Positions 18,498 to 63,998 of a stretch of 64,000 nucleotides of DNA are shown here, one piece after another. The stretch lies in IMG/VR virus record IMGVR_UViG_3300011113_000640, positions 62,001 through 126,000 of that record; one strand, given 5' to 3'. Position numbers and translations under genes: made by a program. The notes under the pieces are model-generated. The model did no database searches and had not been told where the DNA came from. It was given only the letters and a program-made list of their open reading frames with translations. Position 1 is the first letter of the stretch. Each line of letters opens with the position of its first letter.

Positions 18498-19781
18498 ATG
18501 AACATTCCTATAGACCGCTTGTATCATTACATTGAGAGCTGTGCCAAAAAAATCTACGGTGATCATGTTTTAATTTATCGTTTTTGGCCGCATGGTTCAA
18601 AAAACATTGAGAATCTGACTTCATTACACCCTCTAAAGTCTTGGCTGGAACTGCAGACCTTGCCTGTAATATATTGCAATGATCAAGAACCTCTACAATA
18701 TGACTACTACAAAAACAATTTAAAACAATTCGACGGGAAATTTGCAGATCTGTTGGTAAAATTAAATTTGGATTACAAAGTAACAAATCTAAATTCTTAT
18801 CAAAATATATTTGCCAAAAACATACTGTTGCACAGTGAAAAAAATTCAACTGATTTAGAAAAATATCAAAAACATGACCAATTAATTTTGGTCTATTACT
18901 GGAGTCATGCTGTCATAGCCCGAGACTGGTATAGATTTGCAGAGCATGTAGATTTTCAAAAAAGTCCTAAAAGATTTTTTTTGATTTACAATCGCTCTTG
19001 GACCGGTACTAGAGAATACCGGCTTAAATTTTCTGATTTGTTGATTGATGCCGAGCTAGTCAAGCATTGTCAAAGCACATTTAATCCTCAAGATTCTGAA
19101 ACAGATGTACGTTATACAAACTATGCGTTTCAAACAAAAAAATGGCAACCAACACACAAATTAGAAAAATATTTTGCTCCAAACAGTGCACCTGCTAGTA
19201 GCAGTGCGGATTTTGAGATTCTTGATTACTGTGACACAGAAGTTGAAGTTGTGCTTGAAACTTTGTTTGACGACAATCGTTGGCATTTGACTGAAAAAAT
19301 TCTTAGACCCATTGCATGCGGTCAACCGTTTATCTTGGCCAGCACGCCGGGCAGTCTAGAATATTTAAAACAATATGGTTTTCAAACCTACCAAGAGGTC
19401 TGGAACGAAGACTATGACACCGTTACTGACCCAGAATCAAGATTACATAAAATCATTGACTTGATGAAATATCTGGTTGGTCTCAACGACAGACAAAAAA
19501 AAGATATCATGCATCGAGCGCAGAAGATAGCCGATCACAATCGAAAGTTATTTTTCAGTAAAGAATTTTTTGATAGAATAACAAATGAGTTAGAAACAAA
19601 TTTGGTGGCGGCTTTTGCCTGCCTAAAAGTGTTGCCGGCAAATCAAAATTTCATAGATAGATACACTAAGATACTAGCAAATCCTATCACAAAAAATTTT
19701 TTAAGTCTCGATCAAGATATTCTGTCCCCTAATTTGCACATGGTTGACCAAGCATTAAAGTTAGCTCAAAGCAGACCATAA
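18498..19781 (+). CDS. Glycosyltransferase-like protein (TEK family paralogue 1)
   Basis: VVLET...LTEKILRPIACGQPFI...LKQYGFQT...EDYD; AT-rich. Confidence 0.55.
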   Translation: MNIPIDRLYHYIESCAKKIYGDHVLIYRFWPHGSKNIENLTSLHPLKSWLELQTLPVIYCNDQEPLQYDYYKNNLKQFDGKFADLLVKLNLDYKVTNLNSYQNIFAKNILLHSEKNSTDLEKYQKHDQLILVYYWSHAVIARDWYRFAEHVDFQKSPKRFFLIYNRSWTGTREYRLKFSDLLIDAELVKHCQSTFNPQDSETDVRYTNYAFQTKKWQPTHKLEKYFAPNSAPASSSADFEILDYCDTEVEVVLETLFDDNRWHLTEKILRPIACGQPFILASTPGSLEYLKQYGFQTYQEVWNEDYDTVTDPESRLHKIIDLMKYLVGLNDRQKKDIMHRAQKIADHNRKLFFSKEFFDRITNELETNLVAAFACLKVLPANQNFIDRYTKILANPITKNFLSLDQDILSPNLHMVDQALKLAQSRP

Positions 19782-19804
19782 ATGCATCACATTTAGAATA
19801 CCCG

Positions 19805-20038
19805 TTAATTGGGTCGGCAGATGTTTGAACTTTTGATGCCATTCAAGGTAAACTGACTCACAAATTTGTCCACATCACTGTGTAAACCGGGCATGCGATG
19901 TGGCAAGAACCACAAGTTTAAATAAGTCCAAGTCCAAGAATCAATCCACCAATTTACGTAATTGTCAACAGGTTGCCGCACAACATCCCAACCAGAAATC
20001 CGTGAAATTTCAGGCCAGTATGTTTGCCAGTAGATCAT
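19805..20038 (-). CDS. Small Trp-rich hypothetical protein
   Basis: 77 aa ORF. Confidence 0.45.
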   Translation of the reverse strand: MIYWQTYWPEISRISGWDVVRQPVDNYVNWWIDSWTWTYLNLWFLPHRMPGLHSDVDKFVSQFTLNGIKSSNICRPN

Positions 20039-20196
20039 GATAAACTGGTGGTCAATACCACCATGCAGGTCAACAGCATAGCGGTCATGATGGCAAATAG
20101 ATTGGTATAATCTCCAAACATGGTTTTGACACTCAAGATTAGAGTAAGGTAAACCACTGTTACCAAAAGCAGGATGTGCGTGAATTGTAGCATCAT
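20035..20196 (-). CDS. Small membrane protein
   Basis: Read manually (MMLQFTHILLL...); two hydrophobic segments; TAAATA upstream. Confidence 0.45.
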   Translation of the reverse strand: MMLQFTHILLLVTVVYLTLILSVKTMFGDYTNLFAIMTAMLLTCMVVLTTSLS

Positions 20197-20200
20197 GTAT

Positions 20201-20569
20201 TTAATACTGAATGCGTAATCCTATACTGAGATTGTTTGCCACTGCGGCGGCTTCGAGCACTGTGATGCCGATCAACCAGTTTTTGCGTTGGCTTTCCCAG
20301 TTATTTGCTACTAGAAAAATCAAAGGCACCGAAATCATAAAATGCCTGTTGACCTGTGCTGTGGTTGGATGAGATCCCAGGAAGGGATTGCGTTCATAAT
20401 ACCCTTCATTGTAGCGATGGGTCATGTTGCGTGTGGTCAACCAATCACCTACCAGCAAGGCCCCAGCAGCCCAACCCCAGGCTCGTTCCTCTGAGGTCCA
20501 AGGACGGGTTTCGGCCTGGGCCAAATTTACCATCACTGCCATTAACAAGCAAACAAATATTTTAGACAT
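20201..20569 (-). CDS. Secreted or membrane hypothetical protein
   Basis: Signal peptide (AQA-E); E-x-NP motif; TAAATA 7 nt upstream. Confidence 0.6.
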   Translation of the reverse strand: MSKIFVCLLMAVMVNLAQAETRPWTSEERAWGWAAGALLVGDWLTTRNMTHRYNEGYYERNPFLGSHPTTAQVNRHFMISVPLIFLVANNWESQRKNWLIGITVLEAAAVANNLSIGLRIQY

Positions 20570-20606
20570 GATGGAATATTTAAGATATCAACCGGTGGAT
20601 TAAAAT

Positions 20607-20628
20607 AAAAAGCCCCTTGCGGGGCTTT
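20607..20628 (-). terminator. Intrinsic terminator
   Basis: AAAGCCCC-TTGC-GGGGCTTT hairpin with a U-tract on the - strand. Confidence 0.8.
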
Positions 20629-20723
20629 GGAGTATGGAGCAGGGTCGATTCCTTGTTTTTTTATATCGACTCAGTATTTACAGGTAGGTTTATAAAAAAT
20701 TACCACGCATATTATGTGTCAGC

Positions 20724-20888
20724 TCAAGAGCGAACGTCGGGCGGCCAAAATGTTTCTATGTAATCCTGCTCAACTCCATTGGTATCAGTCACACGATCTT
20801 CATATTCTTCTGGTTTTTCCAGATTCTGTTTGTTGTTGTTAAGCTTCACAATATACTCAGCCAAGGTTTTAATAGTGTTGCCATCCAT
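20724..20888 (-). CDS. Small hypothetical protein (54 aa)
   Basis: Read manually (MDGNTIKTLAEY...); AGGAGG RBS. Confidence 0.55.
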   Translation of the reverse strand: MDGNTIKTLAEYIVKLNNNKQNLEKPEEYEDRVTDTNGVEQDYIETFWPPDVRS

Positions 20889-20909
20889 ACAATATCCTCC
20901 TACAAATAC

Positions 20910-21386
20910 TTATTTGGCTAGAGGATTGTCCATGGCCTTTTGTATCTTGACATCTACTTCCCGGCGCATCTGCCGCAGGTCCTGATCCACTTCACGGTTC
21001 AACTGCTTGCCATCACGCTCAACTTGCTCCACGATCTTTTCTAACCTACGTATATCTTGTTTAAGATCGTTCTTGATGTCCTGGGTGTACTGAACCGATT
21101 TTTCCGAATTCTGCATGGTCAGTTCCATCTTCTTGTTGAGCTCACTCAAATCAGGTGCTACATATTCGGCAATGCGTTTCTTCATTCCTTGATAGTCCTT
21201 GTACACTTCAAAAGCACCATACAGAGCACCCAAGGTACTGCTGACAATGGTTGCAGCAACCATGAGCTTGGCTGGTGTGAATTCGTAGCCGCCGATGCTG
21301 ATCACAGTATCTTTGCTCATATACTTTTTGGCGGCAGCTTCTAGCTCGTCGACTTTTTTGTTTACATCTTTTATTTCTTCAGTCAT
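20910..21386 (-). CDS. Membrane-anchored coiled-coil protein
   Basis: Hydrophobic segment followed by heptad-rich helix; start at MTEEIKD. Confidence 0.65.
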   Translation of the reverse strand: MTEEIKDVNKKVDELEAAAKKYMSKDTVISIGGYEFTPAKLMVAATIVSSTLGALYGAFEVYKDYQGMKKRIAEYVAPDLSELNKKMELTMQNSEKSVQYTQDIKNDLKQDIRRLEKIVEQVERDGKQLNREVDQDLRQMRREVDVKIQKAMDNPLAK

Positions 21387-21387
21387 G

Positions 21388-22899
21388 TTACTTTCCTCTT
21401 TGATATTGTTGATCCACCATGTCCGAGTGGAGGCGGTCGCTGGCACCAGTTAACCCACGCAAGGCCGCGCGATTGTCCACAGTGGGTCGTCCATTCACAT
21501 ACAAGCGAGCCATCCGTAGACCATTTACATCTACAAGTCCACCACCATAAGAATCAAAACCTGGCACAAATCCCATGAGTGCCACTACCACACCTTGTGT
21601 AGCTGTCTGTGCTTCAAAGGTTCGGGCACCGGCACTTTGTCGGGCCACTTCTTGTGCTTGAGCTTCTATTCTGGCCTTGGCTGTGTTAGTTGATCCACTG
21701 GCAACAGATTTGATTTCACCGTCAGCTTTTTTGGTTTCTTGTGTTTGAGTCTGTGGTGACGAAGCAGTAGATGTAGTCTGAGCAGGTTGACTTGACACAG
21801 TGTTAGAGATTGTGGTTGATATGTCAGTTTTGTTTATAGTGCTGGTAGAACTTGTCACTGATGTAACACCTGTGGTGCTGGTAGTGCTGGGGGTAGTGAT
21901 AGTACTGTCTACTGTGCTGTCACCGGTGCGACTGACTTCGGTGTTGACTGTGCCGTCGGATCGGACAGTGGTAGTAGGAGTAGAGGTGCTTACAGTCGCG
22001 GTAGTGATGGTAGGAGTAGAGATGCTGGGTATGTTCAGGATGTTTCGCTTGGTGTAGGCCTGCGAATAGTTAGGACAGCTTTGGCTGTACAGACCATCTA
22101 GATTGCACTGATAAGCCAGATAGGCTTCAGCATATCCAGGACAGGCTGGATTATAAAGTGGGTTGGCTGTGCATTGTTGTGTAAAGTAAGCGGCCGCATA
22201 CCCAGGACAGGCTGGATTGTAAAGAGCACTGATGGTGCACTGCTGATTGAAATAGGCCGTGGCATAGTTGAGACAAGTAGGACTACTCAAGGGATTGGCC
22301 GCACACTGATCAAAACTGTAGTTCAATGACAGACTAGGATCTCGCAATCGCGGACCATATAGGCCCATCCAGAATCTATCATCTACTCCAGAAACTGCCA
22401 TGCTGAGATATCCAGTGGATGCCAGAGCATAAGGATTCGTAAAAGTTTTAGTGCCTTGTTCCAAGTTCCAACCTGCTGATTCTTGCACAGCATGTGTCAT
22501 GGTCTGGCTTTCCAGCGTGCTGCCGCCAGGATCACTCAGCAGGATGGCCACACCCAAACTGCCACTGTTGTATCCACCATTCATCCATTGATACCGCCAG
22601 TTGAATCCGTTGATCTGTATGCCCGTGCCTTGCAGGGCCGTGTTGATGGCTATGGTCTGGCTCACTGTGCTGGGCAAGTAGCCAAATCTTATGGTGTTGG
22701 TGTCGGAGTTGTAGTAGGCCGAGCCCGTGGTATAGCCGGCACCCTCCACAGCGGCGATACCTCCATTATTGAGCACCTGGTTGCTGGGTATGCCCCAGGC
22801 TGTGCCCGCAGGATTGATCAGATTGGGTGTGGTCTGTGTCTGTGCCTGGACGGTCAGGCTCAAGGTCATGCCCAACAACCACGTGATCAAGTATTTCAT
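21388..22899 (-). CDS. Secreted protein with Cys-rich repeats and Ser/Thr-rich linker
   Basis: Signal peptide; four C-x9-C repeats (e.g. CTANPLYNPACPGY); long T/S tract. Confidence 0.7.
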   Translation of the reverse strand: MKYLITWLLGMTLSLTVQAQTQTTPNLINPAGTAWGIPSNQVLNNGGIAAVEGAGYTTGSAYYNSDTNTIRFGYLPSTVSQTIAINTALQGTGIQINGFNWRYQWMNGGYNSGSLGVAILLSDPGGSTLESQTMTHAVQESAGWNLEQGTKTFTNPYALASTGYLSMAVSGVDDRFWMGLYGPRLRDPSLSLNYSFDQCAANPLSSPTCLNYATAYFNQQCTISALYNPACPGYAAAYFTQQCTANPLYNPACPGYAEAYLAYQCNLDGLYSQSCPNYSQAYTKRNILNIPSISTPTITTATVSTSTPTTTVRSDGTVNTEVSRTGDSTVDSTITTPSTTSTTGVTSVTSSTSTINKTDISTTISNTVSSQPAQTTSTASSPQTQTQETKKADGEIKSVASGSTNTAKARIEAQAQEVARQSAGARTFEAQTATQGVVVALMGFVPGFDSYGGGLVDVNGLRMARLYVNGRPTVDNRAALRGLTGASDRLHSDMVDQQYQRGK

Positions 22900-23411
22900 T
22901 TTCTGCTCATGGGTTTGACTGCATCTGCCTGTGGCGCATAATTGCCAACATTTTCTCGCTTGACCGCATCAAGCACACCACGACGTTGCCATTCTTCTTT
23001 GGCTTCAGCACCAATCTTGCCATCCACTGGGCATGGTGTGCCTGCAGCAATCATGGCAGTGAATATACGATCGTCCTGGCACAGCGTGGCCACAGCCGCG
23101 ACCTTCATGCCCATGTCAAACAAATTCTTGGACAACTTGATGCGTTCGCAGTTCATGTCACGCATGGTACCACCCATCGAAATACCCAGGATCTGTGTCT
23201 GCACAGCACCCGAGGCTGCCACGGCACACACATCATTGTTGATGGTGGTTATGGCCGGCGCTATGGCCGTGGGTGGCGGGCTTTTGACCGTGGTTTCACT
23301 GCGAGTAGTCGAATCGGTGACAATGTTGCTGGTATCAGCCACAGCAGGTGCGGCCGCTAAAACGGCAGATACAATGGCCCATCTGCCCAGGCTTTGAATT
23401 GTGTTGATCAT
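22896..23411 (-). CDS. Secreted Cys-containing conserved phage protein
   Basis: Signal peptide; SPPPTAIAP...NDVC...DMNCERIKLSK...LCQD...TPCP. Confidence 0.7.
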   Translation of the reverse strand: MINTIQSLGRWAIVSAVLAAAPAVADTSNIVTDSTTRSETTVKSPPPTAIAPAITTINNDVCAVAASGAVQTQILGISMGGTMRDMNCERIKLSKNLFDMGMKVAAVATLCQDDRIFTAMIAAGTPCPVDGKIGAEAKEEWQRRGVLDAVKRENVGNYAPQADAVKPMSRK

Positions 23412-23508
23412 TTTTCTTTGGATTGGTTTTGCCAATCTTCTCCATGTGTTCCTTATCTTGGAACATCATGTATATTTAACGAAAAAATACTGGAAAAATG
23501 TTGCTACA

Positions 23509-23709
23509 TTACTTGTTTGCGTGGTACACTCGACCATTTAGAACAACAGCACCATCTTTGACTGCTTCTCGATACAGTTGACCCCATCGTTCAGCCACAG
23601 CCGAATCACCCATGTAAGGTGAAATCACCCGGCCATGTTCGTCAGTCCAATACCAACTGGTATTGACCGCGTCACCATAGTGCTTTAATTGTATGTTGGC
23701 CGAGCTCAT
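23509..23709 (-). CDS. Hypothetical protein
   Basis: 66 aa, coupled to neighbour. Confidence 0.55.
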   Translation of the reverse strand: MSSANIQLKHYGDAVNTSWYWTDEHGRVISPYMGDSAVAERWGQLYREAVKDGAVVLNGRVYHANK

Positions 23710-23897
23710 GGTTTTTGTTCTTTGTTTTTCAAATCTCTCAAGGCTGTGCGATAGGCCTCTTCATGGTCCAAGGCCTCCACGGTTTCAAAGTCTTGGGTTC
23801 CGTCCGCAGTCAAATAGGTCACGTTCCATAGTTTGCCTGCGATGTGTTTGACTTCAACCACATGGAATGTTGAGTTTAGGTTATTTTTTGCAGGCAT
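23706..23897 (-). CDS. Hypothetical protein
   Basis: 63 aa. Confidence 0.55.
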   Translation of the reverse strand: MPAKNNLNSTFHVVEVKHIAGKLWNVTYLTADGTQDFETVEALDHEEAYRTALRDLKNKEQKP

Positions 23898-24094
23898 TCC
23901 AATATCATGATGCCTAGTGATCCCAAAACAACCAAAACAAAAAATATAGGTTCTAGATTCATGTCATGCTCCTTTCACGTGAACAGCGGGTGTGGCTCTT
24001 GGCGGAGCCACATTCTTGCGCATGACATCGGATTCTATCACTATCAGCGCAAGTAACACACACAACACCGCTACAAATATAAATGGTTGCGGAT

Positions 24095-24529
24095 TCATTT
24101 ATACAGTTTGAAAAAATAAGTGACCGCTGCTGCCGCAGTCATGCACCACCAAAAAACTTGTACTTGGCGAGCACGGTCCTTATCCATGTATTTTAGCTCT
24201 TCCTGTCGTTCACGTTCCATCTTGGCCTTGACTGCTTCCACTTCGGTCCAGGCCGTTTTGCCATACTTGGATATGGTTTGTTGTTTGATGCGTTCTACTT
24301 CACGCTGGTGTGCTTTTTCGGCTTCGTAGCGTTCTACAGCCTTGAACTCGGCCATGGCGGCCCGGCGTGCTTCCTCGGCCTTGGCTCTGAGTCGAGCCTG
24401 ATGTTGTTGTTGTACCGCAGCTTCCATGTCGGCCTGCTGTGAGGTCACAACTGACCCTAGCTCTTTTCCAGCCGCCTGGGCTCCTTTGAGTGTGTTGGCT
24501 GCTGATTTGGCTCCGGCCACTGGATCCAT
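24095..24529 (-). CDS. Coiled-coil protein with C-terminal membrane anchor
   Basis: 144 aa, AGGAG RBS. Confidence 0.65.
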   Translation of the reverse strand: MDPVAGAKSAANTLKGAQAAGKELGSVVTSQQADMEAAVQQQHQARLRAKAEEARRAAMAEFKAVERYEAEKAHQREVERIKQQTISKYGKTAWTEVEAVKAKMERERQEELKYMDKDRARQVQVFWWCMTAAAAVTYFFKLYK

Positions 24530-24539
24530 GATGGCTCCT

Positions 24540-25094
24540 TTATATGATAACAGGCAACCACAACCATATGGCCTGGCTCAGCAGGATCATGGCCACAGCT
24601 CCAACTGCAATGCTGGCCCGATACATTTTATTGCTCACGGCCAAGATGCTGGCTGTCAACAACACGATGGCTATCTGGAACAGACTGCCGGCATAGGTAT
24701 ACCAGGGGCTACGATGTTTGGCTTCGGCGCGGCTGGCTTCAAGACTGCGAGCTTTGGCCATGAGTTCTTGCTTGCCTTCACCGGACTTGGGATCACTTTC
24801 ATAGCGATCGATCTTGGCCTGCAGGTCTGCGGCTTTCTTACGATCGCCTGCCCGCACTGCATCTTCGTAGGCCATTTCGGCTAGAGTTTGTTTGATGCTT
24901 TTGGCTTGATAGAATGCCCAGGTGTTGTTGGCATCTATGGTGTTGTTGAGTATTCTACTAGAGTTGGCACCACCCATGAGTGTGTTGATGGCCAACATGG
25001 CAGCCAACACAGTGATTACCCATCCAGCTTTGTCTTTGATCTGTGCTTCACGCTCGCTGCGACTCAGCGGCTTTGTTTCCGTTGCTACACTCAT
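24540..25094 (-). CDS. DUF4337-like membrane protein
   Basis: WAFYQAKSIK motif, three TM segments. Confidence 0.75.
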   Translation of the reverse strand: MSVATETKPLSRSEREAQIKDKAGWVITVLAAMLAINTLMGGANSSRILNNTIDANNTWAFYQAKSIKQTLAEMAYEDAVRAGDRKKAADLQAKIDRYESDPKSGEGKQELMAKARSLEASRAEAKHRSPWYTYAGSLFQIAIVLLTASILAVSNKMYRASIAVGAVAMILLSQAIWLWLPVII

Positions 25095-25145
25095 AATTGC
25101 TCCTTTTTTTTAAGAGTCTTTTTATTATGTAGGTATTTATCCAGA

Positions 25146-25496
25146 TTAAGTTTTTGGTATCACCGGGCTCCAACTATCGTCCAGATCCAAAGTTTTCAAC
25201 AGATCTATGCGAGTGTTTAAATCCGCATAGAATGTGTCCAATTCGCCGCCCCATTTGCCCACAAGTTGTTCTATGGCCTGTTCGCAGTAATTCCAATTGC
25301 GTTTTCCATACTCCAGGATGAGATTGGCATGTAATTCTTTAAAATTATCTGCTTGAGCCAATTCTTGTATGGGCATGTTTTCAACCACACAACAGGCTGT
25401 GTGGACGTTGCCATCAGGCAACCTAAAGGTATCCAGATCCAACACTGTGTATTTTTCTTCTAGGCCTGATATGTGATTTTTGAATATGATGTGCAT
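25146..25496 (-). CDS. Hypothetical protein
   Basis: 116 aa. Confidence 0.65.
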   Translation of the reverse strand: MHIIFKNHISGLEEKYTVLDLDTFRLPDGNVHTACCVVENMPIQELAQADNFKELHANLILEYGKRNWNYCEQAIEQLVGKWGGELDTFYADLNTRIDLLKTLDLDDSWSPVIPKT

Positions 25497-25514
25497 GATG
25501 TTTAAATAGTTATC

Positions 25515-26306
25515 ATGTCAGTGAGCTTTGATTTAATTTCAGATTTGCATGTAGAGACTTGGGACCAATTTGATTGGAGTGATCAGGCCACTTCGCCCTA
25601 TTGCATAGTGGCAGGAGATGTGGCACGCAACCGAGAAAGATTATTACAATCACTTGAGAATCTTGGCCGCTGTTATCCTGGTGGAGTTTTTTATGTAGAT
25701 GGCAATGAGGAACACAAAGATTACATAGACGATCTAGTGGCCAGTTACCGAGATCTTGCCAAGGATATTTCGACCATAAAAAATGTAGTTTACATGCAAG
25801 ACAATGTTGTCATCATCAATGGTGTTGCTCTGTTAGGAACCAATGCCTGGTGGACCTATGACTTTGATCCGGACATTGACGTTGAATCCAGCATACAAGC
25901 CATACAAGATCATTTTGGCATTTCAAATTCAGCAGCCACCAATATTGTAGGAGTGGCCTACAATGATGCCAATTACATGATCAACAGTGTGCGCAAATTA
26001 CAAACTCACAAAGAAGTGGCTACCATAGTTATTGTCAGTCATACTGTGCCAGCACCTTGGATTGTGTCACATGATCCTGATCTAGTAGGAACCTGGAGAT
26101 ACAACGGCATGGGCAACAGTGTTATCACTAGAGCCATCGACGAGGATACCGAAAACAAAATCCATACCTGGTGTTTTGGTCATTATCATAGACCTGTTGA
26201 CCAGAATTTTGGCGGTATCAGATACGTGAGCAATCCACGGGGTCGCGGCGGCACACCATGGAGCCAACCTGTGTATTATCCCAAAAGAATTGTTGTGGAC
26301 TTCTAA
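25515..26306 (+). CDS. Calcineurin-like metallophosphoesterase
   Basis: SDLH, AGD, GNEE (canonically GNH), SHT, FGHYH, SNPRG. Confidence 0.85.
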   Translation: MSVSFDLISDLHVETWDQFDWSDQATSPYCIVAGDVARNRERLLQSLENLGRCYPGGVFYVDGNEEHKDYIDDLVASYRDLAKDISTIKNVVYMQDNVVIINGVALLGTNAWWTYDFDPDIDVESSIQAIQDHFGISNSAATNIVGVAYNDANYMINSVRKLQTHKEVATIVIVSHTVPAPWIVSHDPDLVGTWRYNGMGNSVITRAIDEDTENKIHTWCFGHYHRPVDQNFGGIRYVSNPRGRGGTPWSQPVYYPKRIVVDF

Positions 26307-26611
26307 GCTGTCTCGGGTTCGAGCTTGATCTGCAAGGGATAATTGTTGTTGCGTGCCTGCACCGTGACTTCGATGCCTTTTTGTTCGGCGATTTCATAAG
26401 GCAATACAGCTACCACAGCACTGCCTGCTTCGTGTATGTCGTGAGTGATTTGCACAGCAGTTTGTTCGTTGTAGTTGAAAGATTCTATCAAGGTCTCAAT
26501 CACAAACTCCATGGGTGTGGCATTGTCATTGAGATAGATAATTTTGAACATGGGTGGTTCAGCTAGTCCCAAGTTTGTTTTGGTTTTTGTGATTGAATCA
26601 GCTTGTGACAT
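26303..26611 (-). CDS. clpS: ATP-dependent Clp protease adaptor ClpS
   Basis: PPMFKIIYLNDNATPMEFV...IHEAG...EIAEQK...YPL. Confidence 0.9.
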   Translation of the reverse strand: MSQADSITKTKTNLGLAEPPMFKIIYLNDNATPMEFVIETLIESFNYNEQTAVQITHDIHEAGSAVVAVLPYEIAEQKGIEVTVQARNNNYPLQIKLEPETA

Positions 26612-26670
26612 TGCGTTTCCTTGTTGGTAGTAGGGAGCGACATGCCCCCTACTGTATTTACTACATTATA

Positions 26671-27111
26671 CTATTTTGCGTAGGTGATCGCAATGGTCTT
26701 TGGCTTCATGGCCTCGGGCACACGACGCTCCAAACGCACTGTAAGAATACCATCCTTGCTTTCGGCCGTGACTACTTCCACATAGTCGGCCATGGTAAAG
26801 GTACGGATGAACTTGCGGGCACTGATGCCTTGATGCAAGTATTCGGTGCCAACCAACATGGCTTCGGGTTGTTTTTCACCTGTGATGATCAATTCTCCAT
26901 CCTTGACGTGAACGTCAATCTCACCTTGTGCAAAGCCTGCTACTGCGACCTGGATTTCAAAGGTCTCATCGCCGGTTTTCAAGATGTTGTAGGGTGGATA
27001 GTTGGTGTTGCTGGCATGATCCATTTGATCCATGATACGACCAAACAAACGATCTACACCAATGCTGTTACGATAAAATGGACTGAGGTCCAGAGCTGTG
27101 ATTTTTGTCAT
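26671..27111 (-). CDS. Small heat-shock protein (Hsp20/IbpA-like)
   Basis: IGVDRLF, YPPYNI, AVAGF, YLHQGISARKF, DGILTV, PEAMKPKTI. Confidence 0.95.
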   Translation of the reverse strand: MTKITALDLSPFYRNSIGVDRLFGRIMDQMDHASNTNYPPYNILKTGDETFEIQVAVAGFAQGEIDVHVKDGELIITGEKQPEAMLVGTEYLHQGISARKFIRTFTMADYVEVVTAESKDGILTVRLERRVPEAMKPKTIAITYAK

Positions 27112-27173
27112 GTTTTTCTCCTTTAGTTAAGCAAGTATGACTTTAATGTAGACCCGACCATCGGCATCTACAT
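27107..27173 (-). promoter_or_regulatory. ROSE-like RNA thermometer in the Hsp20 5' UTR
   Basis: 5' hairpin ATGTAGA..CCGA/TCGG..TCTACAT, then GUCAU-A-CUUGCUU pairing with the AAGGAG SD and AUGAC. Confidence 0.65.
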
Positions 27174-27191
27174 AATATATTTATAACACAT

Positions 27192-27416
27192 TTACCACCG
27201 TCTGTCAATAAGTCGATATTCGAATTTGCTGTTCCAGGTCGTGGCAAACACAGTATAGAAACGGTCTTGATCAAAGGCCAATCTATGTGTATATTTTATT
27301 GTTTTTTGTGTGTAAGGAATGTTGTAGCGAGTTGCCCAATCAACTATATCAAGACGAACAAGATTTAAAACAAACCCGTAACTTTCGTCCTGAGGCAATG
27401 CAAATTCTACAAACAC
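27192..27416 (-). CDS. Hypothetical protein
   Basis: Probable GTG start just after rpsU; the longer ORF in the track overlaps rpsU. Confidence 0.5.
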   Translation of the reverse strand: MFVEFALPQDESYGFVLNLVRLDIVDWATRYNIPYTQKTIKYTHRLAFDQDRFYTVFATTWNSKFEYRLIDRRW

Positions 27417-27417
27417 A

Positions 27418-27639
27418 TCAATAGAGTTTTTTTGGTAGTTGTTGATCACGCAGTTTTTTGCGCCAGCGTGCAGCGGCACCACCTTTTTTGCGTTTTCTTT
27501 TGGTAGTGGGTTTTTCGTAGGTTTCGCGACCTCGCAGTTCCTCCAAGAGGCCTTGTTCTTGGATCTTTTTCTTGAACTTGCGCAGAGCACGTTCCACATT
27601 GCCGTCTCGGACGACCACGCTTCTGCGATACTCTTTCAC
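27418..27639 (-). CDS. rpsU: Ribosomal protein bS21
   Basis: [12 protein letters not shown]...[15 protein letters not shown]...AARWRKK. Confidence 0.9.
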
Positions 27640-28835
27640 GAATTTTCCTGTAACAGTGTCATGGGTGTATTTACCTGGGTTTTATTGATTGTGACCTGTA
27701 ATATATTTTGTCGACGGTACCGGGGCAGATCAAACATGTGCGGCAATAACACCCGCTCCAGTTCGCTGTGTAATCCGCGGGCACCTGTGCCGGTTCTCAG
27801 TGTGCGTTCCACTATGAGATCCAGGCTTTCGGGATCAAATTGTAGATTTACCTGATCTTGATCAAACAACCATTGGTATTGACCCACAAAATTGTTTTTG
27901 ATTTCTGTCAACACACTGATCAATTGTGCCCGGGTCAGGGCATGTAGGTTTACATAGTTGCTGAATCTACCCACAAATTCGGGTATCATTCCATACCGCA
28001 CCAGGTCTTCTGGAGTAATGGGTTCTTGTCGGGTATCATCCGCCGATGAGATTTGTGCAGCAAATCCCATGGCTGTGCCTTGCACACGATTTTGTATGAT
28101 ACGGTCCATGCCCACAAACGCACCGCCGGCTATAAACAATATATTTGAAGTGTCAATCTCTACAGTTTCTGTAGTGTTGCTTTTTCTTGTTCCTTGCACA
28201 GGCACCTTGCATCGAGTGCCTTCGACCAATTTCAGCAAGGCCTGTTGCACACCTTCGCCGCTGACATCTCGACTGACCGTTGCACTTTCGCTTTTACGAG
28301 CTATCTTGTCAATTTCGTCCAGGAACACTATGCCGCGCTGACAGCGTTCTACATCGCCATCGGTGGCCATGTATAATCTTGTGATCATGCTTTCTACGTC
28401 ATCGCCTACATAGCCTGCTTCGGTCAAACAGGTGGCATCGGCTATGACAAACGGCACATCAAGATATTCGGCTACGGTGCGGGCCATCAAGGTTTTGCCT
28501 GTGCCAGTAGGACCGATCATGAGTATGTTGGCCTTGGCTATGCGTCGGTCGGCCTGACCGATACGTTTGTAATGATTGGCTATGGCTACGCTGAGCACAA
28601 TCTTGGCTGAATCCTGCCCTACCACGTGCTGATCAAGGTAATCTCTTATGTCTTTGGGATCAGGAACTGAAACTGTGGCGGGCTTTTTTTCTGGTGTGGC
28701 CTTGGTATCTTTGAGAAGCCCGCCACACAGATCCACACACTCGTTGCAGATGGCTACCTTGTGACTGACTATGAGTTTGCCCACACGATCTTTGTGTTTG
28801 TCACAGAAACTGCAATGTTCTATGGCCGGGCTCAC
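27636..28835 (-). CDS. clpX: ATP-dependent Clp protease ATPase subunit ClpX
   Basis: CSFC/ICNEC Zn domain, [38 protein letters not shown] loop, TGARGL; start uncertain (28835 GTG or 28889). Confidence 0.95.
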
Positions 28836-28836
28836 G

Positions 28837-30420
28837 TCAGGCCTGTCCGGTAGATCGTAATCTTTGTTCAATGCTGTCACGTTCAGCATCGCTCAACAAC
28901 TCAGGATCATATTCACCTGTGCTGATTTTTTCTATGAGATGATCTATGTAGTCGTCATTGTAGGCATGGGTATCACTTTGAGACTTGTCTACTTCAATCC
29001 AGGTTTTGCCATTGAACTTGTATAGCACACTGGGCAGTTGATCCACACGCAAGAACATGTCACTCTTGTTGGGGTTTGGTGGAAACGCGGTACCAAACCC
29101 GCGGACTTCACCCATTAATCCTTCAGGACGGTTGTCAGCTTCTAGGCCCAGTTGATCTTGATAGGCAGGATGATTCCAAGGAAAGTCTTCTACCTGTCCT
29201 GTTTGATGCATGCGGCGCCAATGTTTGATTGTTTCTCTTGGGTTGGCTTCTTTCCATTTTCTAATGGCTTCTTTTTCTCGAGGATCAATGCTGTCATCTA
29301 TGTCATCATCTGTTTTAATTTCATCAACAACTGTGTCTACCGGCTGGTTTAATGGAGCATGATCAGCTTCAGGATCTCGGTTAACGATTTTTTTGGCACG
29401 TGTCCACATGCTGTCTAGGCCAGCCAACACTGTCTGTTTAACAGTCTTTGCGGATTTAGCCGGGTCTTGTTCATCGGGCACATCAATTTCCGGGCCGGTC
29501 TGCGTCCATTCGTCTGTGCCCGAACGTATACCTTCAAACTCTCGAGGGAATGGCCATGGCACAGGTTTTTCCTTTTGTTGTTGATCCCAAAATCTGGCAC
29601 GCTCACGAGCTCGATCAAACCAAGATTGGACTTCTGGATCCTTATCGTTGACTTGCGTTTGATTTTCGCGCTCCCATTCAAAGGTCTTGGTGGCGGCCAA
29701 CAACAGGGTCAGGGCCAAGGGATCAAACACTATGACTATGAGTATGATTACCCAACGCACGGCCTTTTCTAACAGATTGGCATCGGGATTGTCACCATAT
29801 ATGAGTGCGGCAATGTATTTGATAGGACCTACTTCGGCTTCAATCTGCCGAGCTTGGCTGGCTATGGGTGCTCGTTGTTCTTGTAGTTTGGTAATCTCGC
29901 TCTGTGCCCGAGAAATGTCGTTCTGTAGATTGCCACGTTCACGGGCCTGACTACGGCGCAGGTTGGCAGCTTTGTCTGCCCCTTGCTCGCTAATGCTACG
30001 ACTCATGGTCTGATCCACGGCTTCATCCATTTGGCGCAGGGCCTTTCTGGCTGCTTCTATGTTGTCACGCTGTGTCCGGATCTTGTCATCGTAGATCTGC
30101 ACCTGGGCCTGTATGTCGCCCGACGGTACAGCCTGATCCAGGTGTGCCTTGGAAAGGAAGCCAAACACGCCCATGCTGGTCAAGACCATGAGTATGGCCA
30201 CAGCGGCACTGAGATATATCTTGTACTGCATTTCTGCACGGTGCCAATACTTGTGCAACCAGAGAGTTGATACCACCTTGCCTACTTCAAGACTGCTACC
30301 AAGAATAACAATGGGCCAGAAGGCCGCGGCAAATATGGCTGTGAGACCAAGTATGCTGTAATAGGCTGCACTCACTGATATGATCAGTGCAGTTGCGAGA
30401 GTTAGTATGCCAAACCACAT
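28837..30420 (-). CDS. Membrane protein with coiled-coil and acidic C-terminal region
   Basis: Three N-terminal TM segments, heptad region, EVGPIKYIA...VFDPLA TM. Confidence 0.7.
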   Translation of the reverse strand: MWFGILTLATALIISVSAAYYSILGLTAIFAAAFWPIVILGSSLEVGKVVSTLWLHKYWHRAEMQYKIYLSAAVAILMVLTSMGVFGFLSKAHLDQAVPSGDIQAQVQIYDDKIRTQRDNIEAARKALRQMDEAVDQTMSRSISEQGADKAANLRRSQARERGNLQNDISRAQSEITKLQEQRAPIASQARQIEAEVGPIKYIAALIYGDNPDANLLEKAVRWVIILIVIVFDPLALTLLLAATKTFEWERENQTQVNDKDPEVQSWFDRARERARFWDQQQKEKPVPWPFPREFEGIRSGTDEWTQTGPEIDVPDEQDPAKSAKTVKQTVLAGLDSMWTRAKKIVNRDPEADHAPLNQPVDTVVDEIKTDDDIDDSIDPREKEAIRKWKEANPRETIKHWRRMHQTGQVEDFPWNHPAYQDQLGLEADNRPEGLMGEVRGFGTAFPPNPNKSDMFLRVDQLPSVLYKFNGKTWIEVDKSQSDTHAYNDDYIDHLIEKISTGEYDPELLSDAERDSIEQRLRSTGQA

Positions 30421-34260: not shown

Positions 34261-34261
34261 T

Positions 34262-49054: not shown

Positions 49055-49399
49055 TTATACCCGAAAACTTTCTCCGCAACCACAGCGATCCTTTTCAGCC
49101 TGATTACGGAATTCAAACCCTTCGTTGAGACCTTGACGCACATAATCTATTTCTAAATTTTCAAAATAAGGTAGGTCTTTGTCAGAAACATATACACAAA
49201 AATTTTCAAAAAGTTTTTTATATCCAGATTCTAAATAATCAACTGTGTCTAAATATTCTAGCGTGTAAGCCAGTCCTGAGCAACCTGTGGTTCTTACTCC
49301 TATACGGATGCCCACTCCTTTTCCACGACGTTTGAGATTGGCTTGGATTTTTGAGATGGCCTGATCAGTTACTGTTATCAAATTTTCTTTTGTAGTCAT
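49055..49399 (-). CDS. iscA: A-type Fe-S carrier IscA/HesB
   Basis: TTGCSGLAY and CGCGESF. Confidence 0.92.
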   Translation of the reverse strand: MTTKENLITVTDQAISKIQANLKRRGKGVGIRIGVRTTGCSGLAYTLEYLDTVDYLESGYKKLFENFCVYVSDKDLPYFENLEIDYVRQGLNEGFEFRNQAEKDRCGCGESFRV

Positions 49400-58014: not shown

Positions 58015-59025
58015 TTATTGGTTTTGGCCACAGTTGTCATCACAAATAACCAAACGTCCTTGTTCATAGTTTGGTATTTTCCATGCTTTTTCAACAGATT
58101 TAAACCATTCTACACATTCTTGCAAAGGGTGTTCTAGGGCATTGTTTTTAACTATCAGTGGAATCAACTGTGCATTGGCCGCTTGATGGTATTGTCCGGC
58201 ACCATATGTCTTAGGATAAAAACCTGTGTAGCAACATGGGCTAACATCACCGGTGGCTGAAATATAAATGGATTTTAAATTCTTGGTTTCACAGCTAATA
58301 GATGTTGCAGGTACTTGATCAGCTGTGATATCCTCTAGCAAAACATGGTCTGTTTTTTTCTTGTGAAACAAAATCTCAAAATTACGTTCACCTGTGTAGT
58401 TGCCCATGACATGTACCAAATTGCCATGCTGATCAAACACCGGCGCAGTATCACGTCCGTCATTTTTTAATTTAAACTCTTTAAATCCTAGGTCTTGGCT
58501 TATTTTTTTGCAGGTATCAATTTGATGTCTATTGTGATCAAATGGAATCATACTCCAAATAGCATATCCGCCTGCACTGATAAATTCTTTGGCATTCTTG
58601 ATAACCGTGGACCATTGCGTGTTTTGTCGGTAAAGGTGATGTGTGTCCTTGAGCCCATCTAAACAAAATTGCACGGTAGCTGGTGTACGTGCCAGTCTAG
58701 TCCAAAAATCTTTGTTTCTAGCACCACCATTGGTACTGATAGTTACTGCAAGTTCTGGATTGTGAGAGAAAAAATAGTCTACTATTGCCGGCCCTTCGGA
58801 ATTCATAACGATGTCACCAAAATTGCCGTTGATACGAATACTGGTCAACTGTTGTAAAAACTCAGGGCGAAAGATATGTCGGGCTTGTGTTAAACTGAGA
58901 TTGGTTTCAGGGTACCCGCCGTTGTAGGGATACCCCCAGAATGTTCTAGGACACCAAGAACAACTGGCGTTGCAAAGGCTAGAGATTTCCAAATGAACAT
59001 CTCTTATGTCTTGATACGCAATCAC
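58015..59025 (-). CDS. Radical SAM protein with SPASM/twitch-like domain
   Basis: CNASCSWC, NGNFGD, STNGG, GDVSPCC, C-terminal CxxxC. Confidence 0.85.
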   Translation of the reverse strand: MIAYQDIRDVHLEISSLCNASCSWCPRTFWGYPYNGGYPETNLSLTQARHIFRPEFLQQLTSIRINGNFGDIVMNSEGPAIVDYFFSHNPELAVTISTNGGARNKDFWTRLARTPATVQFCLDGLKDTHHLYRQNTQWSTVIKNAKEFISAGGYAIWSMIPFDHNRHQIDTCKKISQDLGFKEFKLKNDGRDTAPVFDQHGNLVHVMGNYTGERNFEILFHKKKTDHVLLEDITADQVPATSISCETKNLKSIYISATGDVSPCCYTGFYPKTYGAGQYHQAANAQLIPLIVKNNALEHPLQECVEWFKSVEKAWKIPNYEQGRLVICDDNCGQNQ

Positions 59026-61428: not shown

Positions 61429-62598
61429 TTATCTGTAAAGAAGGTCAAGCACATAACCTGTGCTGATTACCACAGCAGCACTGGACACTGATGGTGGAGT
61501 AGGACTGGTCACACTGGTTGAGCCTGCATTAGGCAGATACCAATAACCACTTCCACCATTGGTCACTGTGATACCTGTGACCACACCGCCCGAGATAGTG
61601 GCTTCTGCTGTGGCTCCAGCACCGCTGCCAATGATGTTGATCTTGGGAGGCGCCAAGTACCCGCTTCCGCCATTGACCACGTTGATTGCAGTGACCACAC
61701 CATCTTCGGTCACAGCCGTGGCCAGGGCAGGAGTGCCCGGTTGGTCGGGCACAGCAAAAATGCTGTTGTTGAAACACAATCTAATTATAGGATACCAGCC
61801 CACAATATTCATGTATATGGTGCCAGTTTTGTTGTAATAAGTCCAAGATAGCCCGGGGCCGTCTATGGTTTCGGTGGGCACATTGTAAAACAGGCTTTGG
61901 TAGTTTTCTGCGGCCTGCGCTTTGATTGTTCCTGTGTAACCGTCCAGGGTCATCTGCACCGTGGTAATGCCCTTGGTGGGTTCAATAAAACTGCTGAAGT
62001 ATTCGGTATTTAAGAAACTGTTGTAGTAATTTCCACCATTAGGGTTGCCAGAATAGTACGGATTAGAAGGCCATTGGGTCCATCCAATGCCATCTGGACT
62101 GCCTTGAGCACTGAGTTTGATGGTAGGTATGGTGAGTGGTGCACTGGGCACATACTGTGGTAAGATTGAATCCACAATGTTTACAGGGGCACGGGCACCG
62201 GCCTGCGCATCCACAAACACAGCTTCCACAAGGTTACCACTGCTGCGTTGTATGCTGTAGTTGGCCGGTTGTGCCAAGACTTCTAGCAGTTCTGCACTGG
62301 TCAAAGTTACCTTGGCGCGGCCGGTGGGAGCATTCAAGATCACCATGGGTTTTTCTATCAGCAATACATCACCTTCAGTGCTGATCACTCGGAACAGGAA
62401 CGTGCTACCTGTGATGTTCACAGGTTTTTCTTGCTGGTTGATAAACTCAAACAAGAGCACGTTATCAACACCTTTGTTTATGGTCAGGACTTTGGCGTAC
62501 ACAGGATCATACCTATAGATAAAAGTTTCGCCCGCGCCGGTGTCCATGAGCAAGACTCTGGTGATCTGCTGATAGATATAGGCTTGGGTGGAATACAT
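61429..62598 (-). CDS. Baseplate/tail structural protein
   Basis: BppU-like N-terminus; NGGSGY...GAGATA...NGGSGY repeats. Confidence 0.65.
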   Translation of the reverse strand: MYSTQAYIYQQITRVLLMDTGAGETFIYRYDPVYAKVLTINKGVDNVLLFEFINQQEKPVNITGSTFLFRVISTEGDVLLIEKPMVILNAPTGRAKVTLTSAELLEVLAQPANYSIQRSSGNLVEAVFVDAQAGARAPVNIVDSILPQYVPSAPLTIPTIKLSAQGSPDGIGWTQWPSNPYYSGNPNGGNYYNSFLNTEYFSSFIEPTKGITTVQMTLDGYTGTIKAQAAENYQSLFYNVPTETIDGPGLSWTYYNKTGTIYMNIVGWYPIIRLCFNNSIFAVPDQPGTPALATAVTEDGVVTAINVVNGGSGYLAPPKINIIGSGAGATAEATISGGVVTGITVTNGGSGYWYLPNAGSTSVTSPTPPSVSSAAVVISTGYVLDLLYR

Positions 62599-62658
62599 AC
62601 AGAGTATTTAGCAGGTTATGCTAGGGCTCAAAAACGGTCTGGTAAATATCCGTAACTT

Positions 62659-63036
62659 ATGAGCACTGAATTTTTTGCCCAACTAGCGGAAAAATATCCG
62701 TTTATCACCTTGTGTGTGTATGCTACCACGGAATATGTGGGCATCATACAGAATCAAGACGATGCTATAACCACCATCTATGATTTTGGAGCCATACAAG
62801 ATCTAGCAATCAAACGCAGATTTCTTGAGCTGGCCAACGTTTGGTGGTGGGAAAGCAATAGAACTGTGCCTATAAACATATTCTTGAAAGGTGAGTGGGA
62901 CGTGTTCCGCCCCTATCTGCGTACATTTACCAACAAGGACCTGGAAATCCTGCACGGGCCCATATGCAGTCTCAGTGAAATGAGCCGCAAAAAAAGCAAG
63001 AGAAAAAGTATTACCTTAGTTCGGCGTGTTGAGTAG
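62659..63036 (+). CDS. Hypothetical conserved phage protein
   Basis: YVGIIQN...WWWESNR..PINIFL; TAAATA at 62643. Confidence 0.7.
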   Translation: MSTEFFAQLAEKYPFITLCVYATTEYVGIIQNQDDAITTIYDFGAIQDLAIKRRFLELANVWWWESNRTVPINIFLKGEWDVFRPYLRTFTNKDLEILHGPICSLSEMSRKKSKRKSITLVRRVE

Positions 63037-63585
63037 ATTCATGTGCAGGGCTACCAAGGCCGCATAACTAATCGCATGTGATTTCTTGAACACAAATCCT
63101 CGGCTGTCATCACCGTCCCACACTGAGGTAAACACTTGCTCCCAAGGCAGATTCTGTAGGTGTGCTTTGCCGGGTCTAATAATAGATATGAAAGCTGCCA
63201 TCCTAGGGATGCTGTCAGGGCGCATGGTTTTTAACAGTTCTGTATAGTTGCCCACGTGCACCAGTTGGCCTGCCCAATCCGAGTCGGTCCGTAGTCGCGA
63301 CCAAGGTGGTTCCAGGGCCAACATCGCTTCATAGTGTGATGGACTCTTTATCAGTTGATACACACTCATGTTCAGCAGATCGATCTTGAAATAACCCAAC
63401 TGTTCGGCTGTTTCGTAGTCTATGGCCGCACAGGCATTAACAGGATCCTGGGGTATGTCTGTGACATATATGCCACTGTTGTGACGACGCACCTGTCCTT
63501 GATTGATTTGTCGTGCTGGAACAGATTGTATCAATCGCAACAACTGATCTCTGTCAGCCAAGTCGATGTCAATGTCTGCGCTCAT
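63016..63585 (-). CDS. Miniature DNA polymerase III alpha (DnaE)-like protein
   Basis: DIDID, HNSGIY, FKIDLL, IIRPG and FKKSHAISY, collinear with the C-family polymerase core. Confidence 0.75.
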   Translation of the reverse strand: MSADIDIDLADRDQLLRLIQSVPARQINQGQVRRHNSGIYVTDIPQDPVNACAAIDYETAEQLGYFKIDLLNMSVYQLIKSPSHYEAMLALEPPWSRLRTDSDWAGQLVHVGNYTELLKTMRPDSIPRMAAFISIIRPGKAHLQNLPWEQVFTSVWDGDDSRGFVFKKSHAISYAALVALHMNLLNTPN

Positions 63586-63998
63586 TTTGAATATTTCCGC
63601 AAAATCTGATCAAGTTTCATTGGTCCTAGGGCTTCTATTGTGTTAGAAAAAAAGTAATTGTAGTTGTGTTCGACAAGATCTCGAGCCTGAGCACTGACCA
63701 AAATTTCAGGATGTTGGGCCATCCAGTTGATGGCCTCTGCACACATGCGATATCTTGCTATATGATCTTTTTCGTAATTATATGATTGTAACTGTTCTGG
63801 CAACAAATTCCAAGCAGTTTTAAATCCTAATTGGTTATACAACACGTCGGTGTTGGCCCCAGCAATGGGCCAAGGTATAGATTTAGTGATTGCACATTTA
63901 AGCAGTTTTTCAGTGATCCAGACTTCGTCATTTAACCATGTGGTTTCAGGAAATATCACACAATGATATGCAAGATATTCATCAATGACAAAGAAGCC
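63582..63998 (-). CDS. Glycosyltransferase-like protein (TEK family paralogue 3), 5'-truncated
   Basis: Frame open to the window end; IFPET...WITEK...LGFKT. Confidence 0.5.
   Translation of the reverse strand, partial: GFFVIDEYLAYHCVIFPETTWLNDEVWITEKLLKCAITKSIPWPIAGANTDVLYNQLGFKTAWNLLPEQLQSYNYEKDHIARYRMCAEAINWMAQHPEILVSAQARDLVEHNYNYFFSNTIEALGPMKLDQILRKYSK

Follow-up and report, generated by a model that had tools for sequence, protein, structure and literature searches.

GT-B-fold, glycosyltransferase-like proteins in exchangeable AT-rich slots of a freshwater jumbo phage genome, and their association with radical SAM enzymes

The 64,000-nucleotide stretch analyzed here (the window) covers bases 62001-126000 of IMG/VR record IMGVR_UViG_3300011113_000640, a single 320,541-bp contig with a GC content of 45.9% that is entered as a linear viral record with an estimated completeness of 93%. 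The window carries the genes of a large tailed phage, among them ClpX, an ATP-dependent DNA ligase, both ribonucleotide reductase subunits, a DnaB-like helicase, a Toprim primase, UvdE, a pectate-lyase-type tailspike and baseplate-like domains. The cultured phages closest to it in DnaB are Pseudomonas phage PA5oct (49% amino acid identity) and Agrobacterium phage Atu_ph07. Metagenomes from several independent studies (lake, freshwater and aquatic) contain DNA near-identical to window positions 17000-21000, and the phage is therefore widespread in freshwater. Our subject is a family of proteins encoded between its core genes that share a T-E-K motif, which we call the TEK family, and its relation to the radical S-adenosylmethionine (SAM) enzymes of the same phage. 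The window holds three members (lengths in amino acids, aa):

18498-19781, plus strand: TEK member 1 (P0001), 427 aa, predicted GT-B fold, GC 0.35
49365-50378, minus strand: TEK member 2 (P0002), 337 aa, predicted GT-B fold, GC 0.38, between IscU and IscA genes
63582-64000 and on beyond the window end, minus strand: TEK member 3, C-terminal 138 aa in the window, GC 0.375

When complete, member 3 has 389 aa (genome 125582-126751). All three window translations carry the series ET-x9-10-TEK, P[FW], GF[QRK]T and Y[DN], confirming the shared block by which an earlier note on this DNA had grouped them, and homology was also detected by phmmer between members 1 and 2 (1.5e-15) and by jackhmmer, which recruits member 3 at 2.9e-24. 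The same note had counted three paralogues. That number holds for the window, but an iterative jackhmmer search of the whole genome gave exactly ten, with genes starting at genome positions 80498, 111365, 125582, 164147, 204099, 243745, 254925, 260588, 273870 and 317674; five relatives carry six to nine copies per genome. The half that the paralogues have in common is C-terminal and contains, in order, F-x-x-x-N-G-x-x-R-x-H-R, E-T, T-E-K, P-F, G-F-x-T, E-S-Y-D, an Arg and an Asn, and ET-x9-10-TEK is found in all ten except L008, which lacks the ET. In P0001 numbering, E266, K267, G294 and F295 are invariant in the paralogue alignment and E254, T255, T265, Y306, D307, R315 and N348 are at least 90% conserved; in alignments of 48-94 sequences, R172/R175, E254 and T255 are at least 90% conserved and E266 and K267 are invariant. 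Between the N-terminal halves of paralogues, identity is only 15-30% where they can be aligned at all. Because paralogues within the genome share at most 25-37% identity over partial lengths, they are old, and recent duplication was rejected on this ground. All are mildly acidic (pI 5.4-6.6).

AlphaFold2 models of two members were of high quality, with a predicted local distance difference test (pLDDT) score of 91.5 and a predicted template modeling (pTM) score of 0.88 for P0001 (48-sequence alignment) and values of 91.4 and 0.89 for P0002 (43 sequences). Both models have two alpha/beta (Rossmann-like) domains followed by long C-terminal helices. When they were compared with the PDB using Foldseek, nearly all of the top 50 matches were GT-B enzymes, aligned over 215-299 residues. 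The structural scores against solved structures were:

T4 beta-glucosyltransferase (BGT): P0001 11.9, P0002 9.9
POGLUT1: P0001 10.8, P0002 8.5
POGLUT2: P0001 9.7, P0002 9.6
T4 alpha-glucosyltransferase (AGT): P0001 9.8, P0002 9.4
H. pylori alpha-1,3-fucosyltransferase (FucT): P0001 9.9, P0002 8.5
FUT9: P0001 8.9, P0002 8.1

WaaG, PimA, glycogen synthases and others follow FUT9 in the ranking. In the DSSP assignment of P0001, ET comes after the strand at 249-253 and TEK opens the helix at 266-273, with a similar placement in P0002. In the models, then, the ET/TEK block lies at the position where GT-B enzymes bind the nucleotide-sugar donor. The two-domain fold and the conserved C-terminal donor-site residues that define the GT-B superfamily are both found in the models and alignments. 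With GT-B models and the ET/TEK block at the donor position, the description of these proteins as glycosyltransferase-like proved right at the level of fold and site, and from this we infer that they probably transfer sugars. Viral fusion proteins among the structural neighbors, in which a TEK-like domain is joined to Epimerase/GDP_Man_Dehyd, an MTS methyltransferase or a UDP-glucose/GDP-mannose dehydrogenase, link TEK-like domains to nucleotide-sugar enzymes.

The motif had also been called GT10-like. GT10 enzymes (PF00852; 2NZW/5ZOI, FUT9) resemble TEK proteins in having an acidic residue after a strand and, about 10 residues on, T-E-K at a helix start, a likeness of motif only. The first acidic motif of GT10 is E-N-S, compared with E-T in TEK proteins, and the Arg-bearing segment after the first strand of the TEK C-domain presumably corresponds to a GT10 motif. 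GT10 is also the nearest Pfam-bearing neighbor of TEK proteins in language-model space, at 0.78-0.79, a weak value that serves as a lead only. The resemblance of the Glu-Lys motif thus stands, but membership in GT10 does not: PF00852 had no match in the three window proteins at E <= 1, in the six-frame genome at E <= 10 or in 57 long relatives, TEK profiles find no GT10 chain in the PDB, and GT10 does not appear to be the best structural neighbor. In the H. pylori GT10 FucT, Glu249 and Lys250 contact GDP-fucose (PMC11468063). A genome search with PF00534 (GT4) likewise found none of the TEK genes, only two others, at genome 42988-43995 and 304737-305972.

The family is large and almost confined to viruses. 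A profile of the ten C-domains matched 14,109 metagenomic clusters (formed at 50% identity) with E-values up to 1e-3 and 11,295 with E-values up to 1e-10, and a word search with P0001 alone returned 4,331 relatives. Many of the profile matches are proteins of 700-1000 aa that carry a tandem pair of TEK units. The ESM Atlas clusters near P0001 have a viral share of 95-100%, and BFVD neighbors are uncharacterized proteins of uncultured Caudovirales. A scan of 185,579 GTDB species genomes gave four TEK loci, all in metagenome-assembled genomes (MAGs) and probably mis-binned phage contigs. Neither tblastn of P0001, P0151 and the L005 paralogue against 50,697 GenBank phage records nor megablast of 8 kb of the window against GenBank phages found anything. 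In the literature, we found no description of the family, of its radical SAM module in jumbo phages or of the slot-wise exchange described below. In a study of 'moraphages', four core orthogroups of glycosyltransferases were described for jumbo phages of aquatic habitats; the TEK family and this phage may or may not be among those covered. TEK therefore appears to be a large GT-B-fold family without previous description, and its conserved pairing with twitch radical SAM clusters and its slot-wise exchange also appear to be new. GT-B enzymes, phage glycosylation and flexible AT-rich cargo are as such already known.

Base composition sets the TEK genes apart from the rest of the genome. Their GC contents are 0.35-0.43, compared with a mean of 0.46 for 338 open reading frames (Mann-Whitney p = 1e-6 for GC and 1.5e-5 for GC at third codon positions, GC3), and each is a sharp GC dip relative to its immediate neighbors. 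For comparison of gene content, two complete relatives with terminal repeats were analyzed by reciprocal best hits: G003 (337 kb, 239 reciprocal best hits, median 84% amino acid identity) and G002 (347 kb, 197 hits, median 62%). Two further genes of the window had been judged AT-rich by eye:

33514-34302, minus strand: class I methyltransferase (Methyltransf_24, O-methyltransferase-like; PF13578, E = 3e-15), GC 0.34
8580-9698, minus strand: 372-aa protein with an SGGVDT PP-loop-like motif, GC 0.42, absent in G003 and G002

The impression that these genes, the TEK genes and the radical SAM genes are AT-richer than their neighbors holds fully for the TEK family and the methyltransferase, which is the second most AT-rich long gene and has no orthologue in G003 or G002. 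It holds in part for the two radical SAM genes of the window (50821-51720 and 58015-59025), which are mildly low at GC 0.40-0.41, and the gene at 8580-9698 is only slightly low. The name 'Asn-synthase-like' given to this last gene could not be confirmed, since its sole basis is the SGGVDT motif and no family match was found in Pfam, PHROGs or NCBIfam. Two simple origins of the GC dips were considered and rejected. The dips are not assembly chimeras, because near-identical contigs from other lakes, with zero to few differences, span both ends of TEK member 1. For member 1, recent import from an AT-rich donor was rejected as the sole cause, since the orthologues of this gene in syntenic positions, at 41-53% identity, are just as AT-rich.

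Comparison with the relatives indicated that TEK genes come and go. Reciprocal best hits in G003 were found for four of the ten TEK genes, at 47, 45, 79 and 43% identity, compared with 72% retention of other genes (Fisher p = 0.036). The tendency extends to AT-rich genes in general: of the 27 genes with GC < 0.40, only 3 are matched in G003 by an orthologue with 70% identity or more, compared with 165 of the 283 remaining genes (p = 2e-6, Fisher). The AT-rich genes are the flexible gene pool of the genome. At the sites of TEK genes, the relatives have the following:

Member 2 slot in G003: empty, about 200 bp between flanking core genes that are 92-96% identical to those of this genome
Member 2 slot in G002: a 272-aa unknown and a 427-aa radical SAM gene, GC 0.34-0.37
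Member 3 slot in G003: empty, with overlapping flanking genes; a TEK gene lies one junction further on
Member 3 slot in G002: a 304-aa unknown, GC 0.34
Other cargo at TEK-holding junctions: G002:275409-276323, G002:236007-236705, G002:292122-294230 and G003:273605-277879

The slots of the TEK genes at 164147, 204099 and 260588 are likewise empty or filled with other cargo. Because the same junctions hold TEK genes here and other AT-rich genes in relatives (GC 0.34-0.43, including radical SAM enzymes and unknowns), they are reusable cargo slots. Exchange among them is not free movement, since each TEK subfamily has a home slot; these home slots are conserved across distant relatives, and the TEK genes are AT-rich there as well. 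Orthologues of member 1 (41-53%) follow the same UvdE, amidinotransferase-like and 173-aa protein genes in a 371-kb contig, a 199-kb contig, G003 and G002, and are the most AT-rich gene there too. Those of member 2 (48-52%) stand in the order IscU-TEK-IscA-nuclease-tailspike-ribonucleotide reductase in three other contigs. A 63% orthologue of member 3 occupies the same primase-proximal slot of a relative, and a 49% relative adjoins the large terminase of a different phage.

TEK genes that are retained in their slots diverge far faster than their flanks (for example 45% compared with 82-87% identity in the radical SAM cluster), and copies in a conserved slot reach only 43-47% identity, the genome median being 84%, which may result from allele replacement or diversifying selection. 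Turnover looks like presence/absence variation and allele replacement within the phage clade rather than fresh import. The earlier claim that the family is 'rapidly exchanged' is borne out as to exchange, with members 2 and 3 absent from both relatives and their sites empty or holding other AT-rich cargo, but 'rapidly' has to be qualified in view of the conserved home slots. No shared flanking repeats were seen by eye at the ten TEK borders, where no formal motif search was run.

The second superfamily in these slots is that of the radical SAM enzymes. The genome has 17 radical SAM genes; six match NCBIfam NF033640 (N-terminal twitch-domain radical SAM), and there are also weak matches to SPASM peptide maturases. 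Five of the ten TEK genes lie at most two genes from a radical SAM gene (expected 1.27, p = 0.004). The tightest arrangement is found at genome 242352-250090 (L033:2352-10090), where a radical SAM gene, a TEK gene and four further radical SAM genes follow one another on the plus strand of a genome that is about 80% minus-strand; all five match NF033640. Downstream of 250090 are genes for a carbamoyltransferase, a radical SAM enzyme, an amidinotransferase-like protein, a second TEK protein, an aminotransferase, a short-chain dehydrogenase/reductase (SDR) enzyme and a third TEK protein. This island (genome 240-262 kb) has three TEK and six radical SAM genes in all, so that the description of TEK genes as inserted singly between core genes is valid for the window but fails outside it. 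The core of the island is conserved: all of the 80 IMG/VR loci retrieved with an orthologue of the TEK gene at 243745 carry one to eight radical SAM genes within 10 kb, usually five to seven, at TEK identities down to 41%. Radical SAM genes in such numbers have a precedent in a marine T4-like genome, for which 12 radical SAM genes and iron-sulfur (Fe-S) assembly genes were reported without explanation (PMC5332604). Within the window, the genes in question are:

50379-50765, minus strand: IscU/NifU-like Fe-S scaffold, 128 aa (PF01592, E = 1.3e-51)
49055-49399, minus strand: IscA/HesB-like Fe-S carrier, 114 aa, 65% identical to the Fe-S_biosyn gene of L167, ending in CGCGESF
50821-51720, minus strand: radical SAM enzyme, 299 aa (PF04055, E = 3e-11), GC 0.41, absent in G003, 53% orthologue in G002
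58015-59025, minus strand: radical SAM/SPASM-like enzyme, 336 aa (weak PF04055 and PF13186), GC 0.40, 92% identical in G003
17019-17942, minus strand: protein like amidinotransferases, dimethylarginine dimethylaminohydrolase (DDAH) and arginine deiminase (ADI), 307 aa (phrog_25854; 0.98 to COG1834/ADI clusters in an ESM Atlas feature search)
17935-18456, minus strand: protein adjoining TEK member 1, 173 aa, no Pfam match, orthologues in G003 and G002

Member 2 stands between the IscU and IscA-like genes and adjoins the radical SAM gene at 50821-51720. At the counterpart of window 49055-50765, G003 keeps IscU only and lacks the TEK gene, IscA and the adjacent radical SAM gene. The amidinotransferase/DDAH/arginine-deiminase fold has three paralogues, at window 17019-17942 and genome 169384-170553 and 253909-254928, and two of the three are directly beside TEK genes and kept there in G002 and G003. 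The 173-aa protein also has a paralogue, at genome 9442-10116.

Several genes for making and modifying sugars complete the set. The genome encodes four SDR enzymes of the sugar epimerase/dehydratase type (one GalE above the cut-off and one near dTDP-glucose 4,6-dehydratase), a DegT/PseC-type sugar aminotransferase with one paralogue, a NodU/CmcH/TobZ-family carbamoyltransferase inside the TEK/radical SAM island (genome 251203-252669; L033:11203-12669), a hexapeptide acyltransferase, an AMP-dependent ligase and GT4 and GT2 glycosyltransferases. The SDR enzymes, aminotransferases, carbamoyltransferase and GT4 and GT2 genes support the earlier proposal of a glycan-building system. With variable slots adjoining radical SAM and sugar-tailoring genes, the phage probably builds its own strain-variable glycan. 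We consider it somewhat probable that this phage-encoded system combines a shared TEK donor domain with differing acceptor domains and phage-tailored sugars, and that the slot cargo varies the product.

In such a system, the conserved C-terminal TEK domain would most likely bind a nucleotide-sugar donor without metal, the Glu-Lys pair contacting the donor by analogy with GT10, and the divergent N-terminal domains would most likely pick different acceptors. The SDR enzymes, GalE included, and the DegT/PseC-type aminotransferases would make amino-deoxy sugars, which the carbamoyl-, amidino-like, methyl- and acetyltransferases and the 17 radical SAM enzymes would tailor, with IscU and IscA supplying the Fe-S enzymes. 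One TEK gene is fixed among five or six radical SAM genes that form a conserved cluster, and others, members 2 and 3 included, occupy defined slots between core genes. Because such a slot may hold a TEK gene, nothing or other AT-rich cargo, enzyme sets vary among related phages, and so, presumably, does the glycan.

The same gene content could alternatively serve to make a diffusible natural product, an aminoglycoside- or nucleoside-like compound or a glycosylated ribosomally synthesized and post-translationally modified peptide, which the phage would deploy in infection, for instance against competing phages or for control of the host. Taken together, twitch radical SAM enzymes, a NodU/TobZ carbamoyltransferase, amidinotransferase-like proteins and DegT resemble the equipment of pathways to aminoglycoside and nucleoside antibiotics; the weak SPASM peptide maturase matches and the retention of the core cluster in 80 of 80 loci would also fit. 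But no precursor peptide, scaffold synthase (such as 2-deoxy-scyllo-inosose synthase), exporter or self-resistance gene was identified, the genes are spread over many slots rather than gathered in one cluster, and ten transferases with divergent acceptor domains would be expected for a polymer or a glycan with several sites rather than for one small molecule. We regard this alternative as quite unlikely.

Several observations weigh against the glycan-building system we favor. No sequence-level link to any characterized glycosyltransferase was found through Pfam, PHROGs or PDB profiles: Pfam and PHROGs scans of the three window proteins gave sub-threshold chance matches only (DUF5917, DUF5580_C), PDB profile searches with 10- and 94-sequence TEK alignments gave chance matches only (ATM kinase, 3fd0), and a Pfam scan of 57 long tandem relatives found no real domain. 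A sugar nucleotidyltransferase (PF00483) was not found in the genome, so that the phage would depend on its host for activated sugars. None of the RNA runs searched for the locus of TEK member 1 (window 17000-21000) contains the stretch. A TEK gene inside an IscU-IscA pair is odd for a glycosyltransferase and hints at a tie to radical SAM enzymes tighter than a shared pathway. Finally, T4 DNA glucosyltransferases as the best structural neighbors of the models may point to a nucleic-acid acceptor, and the negative search for TET/JBP had no positive control.

The first and fourth of these points, together with the tight and repeated radical SAM association, would also fit TEK proteins that have the GT-B fold but do not transfer sugars, being instead non-catalytic, nucleotide-binding or accessory partners of radical SAM and Fe-S proteins. 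This seems very unlikely to us: an invariant Glu-Lys pair and conserved Arg residues occupy the canonical donor site across about 14,000 clusters, fusions with nucleotide-sugar enzymes exist, and all top structural matches are active Leloir transferases.

The main alternative concerns the acceptor. TEK enzymes could glycosylate bases of the phage genome as T4 AGT and BGT do, with radical SAM enzymes tailoring the base or sugar and exchange diversifying the modification against restriction. Both models have T4 BGT as their best structural match, with T4 AGT also ranking near the top; in DnaB, the cultured phages closest to this one are PA5oct-like, and PA5oct DNA reportedly contains modified G (PMC12191111); and swappable, fast-evolving modification genes would suit a restriction arms race. 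The similarity to BGT, however, may just reflect that BGT is a minimal GT-B enzyme. No ThyA-type dCMP/dUMP hydroxymethylase (PF00303) was detected in this genome (G000) or in the relatives G001-G003, two of which are complete, although positive controls matched. No TGT/DpdA was found in the genome, nor did the search for TET/JBP, run without a positive control, give a match. The mildly acidic TEK proteins also do not favor a DNA acceptor, and ten transferases, together with tailoring by amino-sugar, carbamoyl and amidino enzymes, go beyond every DNA glycan pathway known. DNA hypermodification is therefore unlikely in our estimate, and in the absence of a detected hydroxymethylase or DpdA, DNA is the less likely target of the glycan-building system. 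Our best guess is that the target is virion surface or fiber proteins, or another phage-made glycoconjugate. S/T/N-rich fiber-like proteins are abundant in the phage; as substrates, the role that the earlier note suggested for fiber proteins, they are plausible candidates only.

A more specific and tentative possibility is that the whole clade builds a radical SAM-tailored glycoconjugate in which a fixed core of five or six N-terminal-twitch radical SAM enzymes and one TEK transferase does most of the work and exchangeable TEK and radical SAM cassettes contribute further steps, giving amino, guanidino or carbamoyl 'serotypes' on the virion as a viral counterpart of O-antigen diversity. If true, the enzyme family behind such glycan serotypes has no characterized member.

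The proposed system has partial counterparts among known viral machineries. The T4 enzymes BGT and AGT (GT63 and GT72) are, like TEK proteins, compact phage-encoded GT-B enzymes of 330-430 aa. They differ in sequence (7-11% identity, and no TEK match to the Pfam T4 glucosyltransferase families) and in number, T-even phages having one or two such enzymes compared with ten divergent paralogues here. Unlike T4, this phage also has no hydroxymethylase, and its TEK proteins are acidic. A functional analogy may be the glycosylation of chlorovirus capsids, mimivirus fibrils and mycobacteriophage virions, where, as here, several glycosyltransferases occur with sugar-nucleotide tailoring enzymes (for mycobacteriophages, Freeman et al. 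2023, as cited in PMC12619734). Chlorovirus glycosyltransferases are among the structural neighbors of TEK proteins (3oy2, 8asa), and the S/T/N-rich structural proteins are potential acceptors, as in virus-encoded protein glycosylation. Compared with those machineries, the system proposed here would use another enzyme family, many radical SAM enzymes and dispersed exchangeable slots. In genome organization, it resembles the hyperplastic regions and cassettes of T4-like phages, with AT-rich accessory genes between core genes, presence/absence polymorphism and reused junctions. Unlike in those cassettes, the cargo belongs mostly to two superfamilies, TEK GT-B proteins and radical SAM enzymes, and no shared flanking repeat or homing endonuclease was seen; several insertions overlap both neighbors by only 4-7 bp.

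These results would give a fold and a probable role to 14,109 clusters (50% identity) that had no Pfam, PDB or cultured-phage representative, and tie the unexplained radical SAM paralogues of large aquatic phages to a testable sugar pathway. If the product decorates virions, its variation could affect host range, stability and recognition in uncultured freshwater jumbo phages; if it is placed on DNA, it would represent a new hypermodification route. The exchange of AT-rich enzymes from slot to slot is also a tractable example of the way in which huge phages turn over their accessory metabolism.

Several other features of the phage were noted. ClpX was confirmed at window 27636-28889, inside a chaperone/protease block (25146-28889) at which relatives also have ClpP and Cpn60; by synteny with L029 and L031, the small open reading frames adjoining ClpX should be ClpS and HSP20. 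The tailspike-like protein at window 46696-48303 combines an Mtd_N (major tropism determinant N-terminal) domain with a pectate-lyase-type beta-helix; its counterpart in G003 shares just 68% identity with it, below the median of 84% for that genome. Directly downstream of the TEK member 1 slot, L029 (14282-17534) and L031 (14912-18287) carry FecR-like, curlin-repeat, CsgG and CsgF genes and a CHASE2-guanylate cyclase; the counterpart here, window ~20200-25100, has partial orthologues in G002.

Two observations may bear on the host, for which Bacteroidota and Burkholderiales are guesses at most. TctC/Bug-family periplasmic solute-binding proteins have three paralogues in the genome (10749-11762, 269088-270002 and 313485-314507; PF03401, E = 2.7e-32 for one of the three), which may hint at a host with tripartite tricarboxylate transporters. 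In GTDB, a 'Haliscomenobacter sp.' MAG has TEK genes on contigs of 183 kb and 148 kb (L049, NZ_JBBAKG010000001.1, and L050, NZ_JBBAKG010000003.1); these contigs may come from a jumbo phage and have been mis-binned, or they may point to a host among the Bacteroidota.

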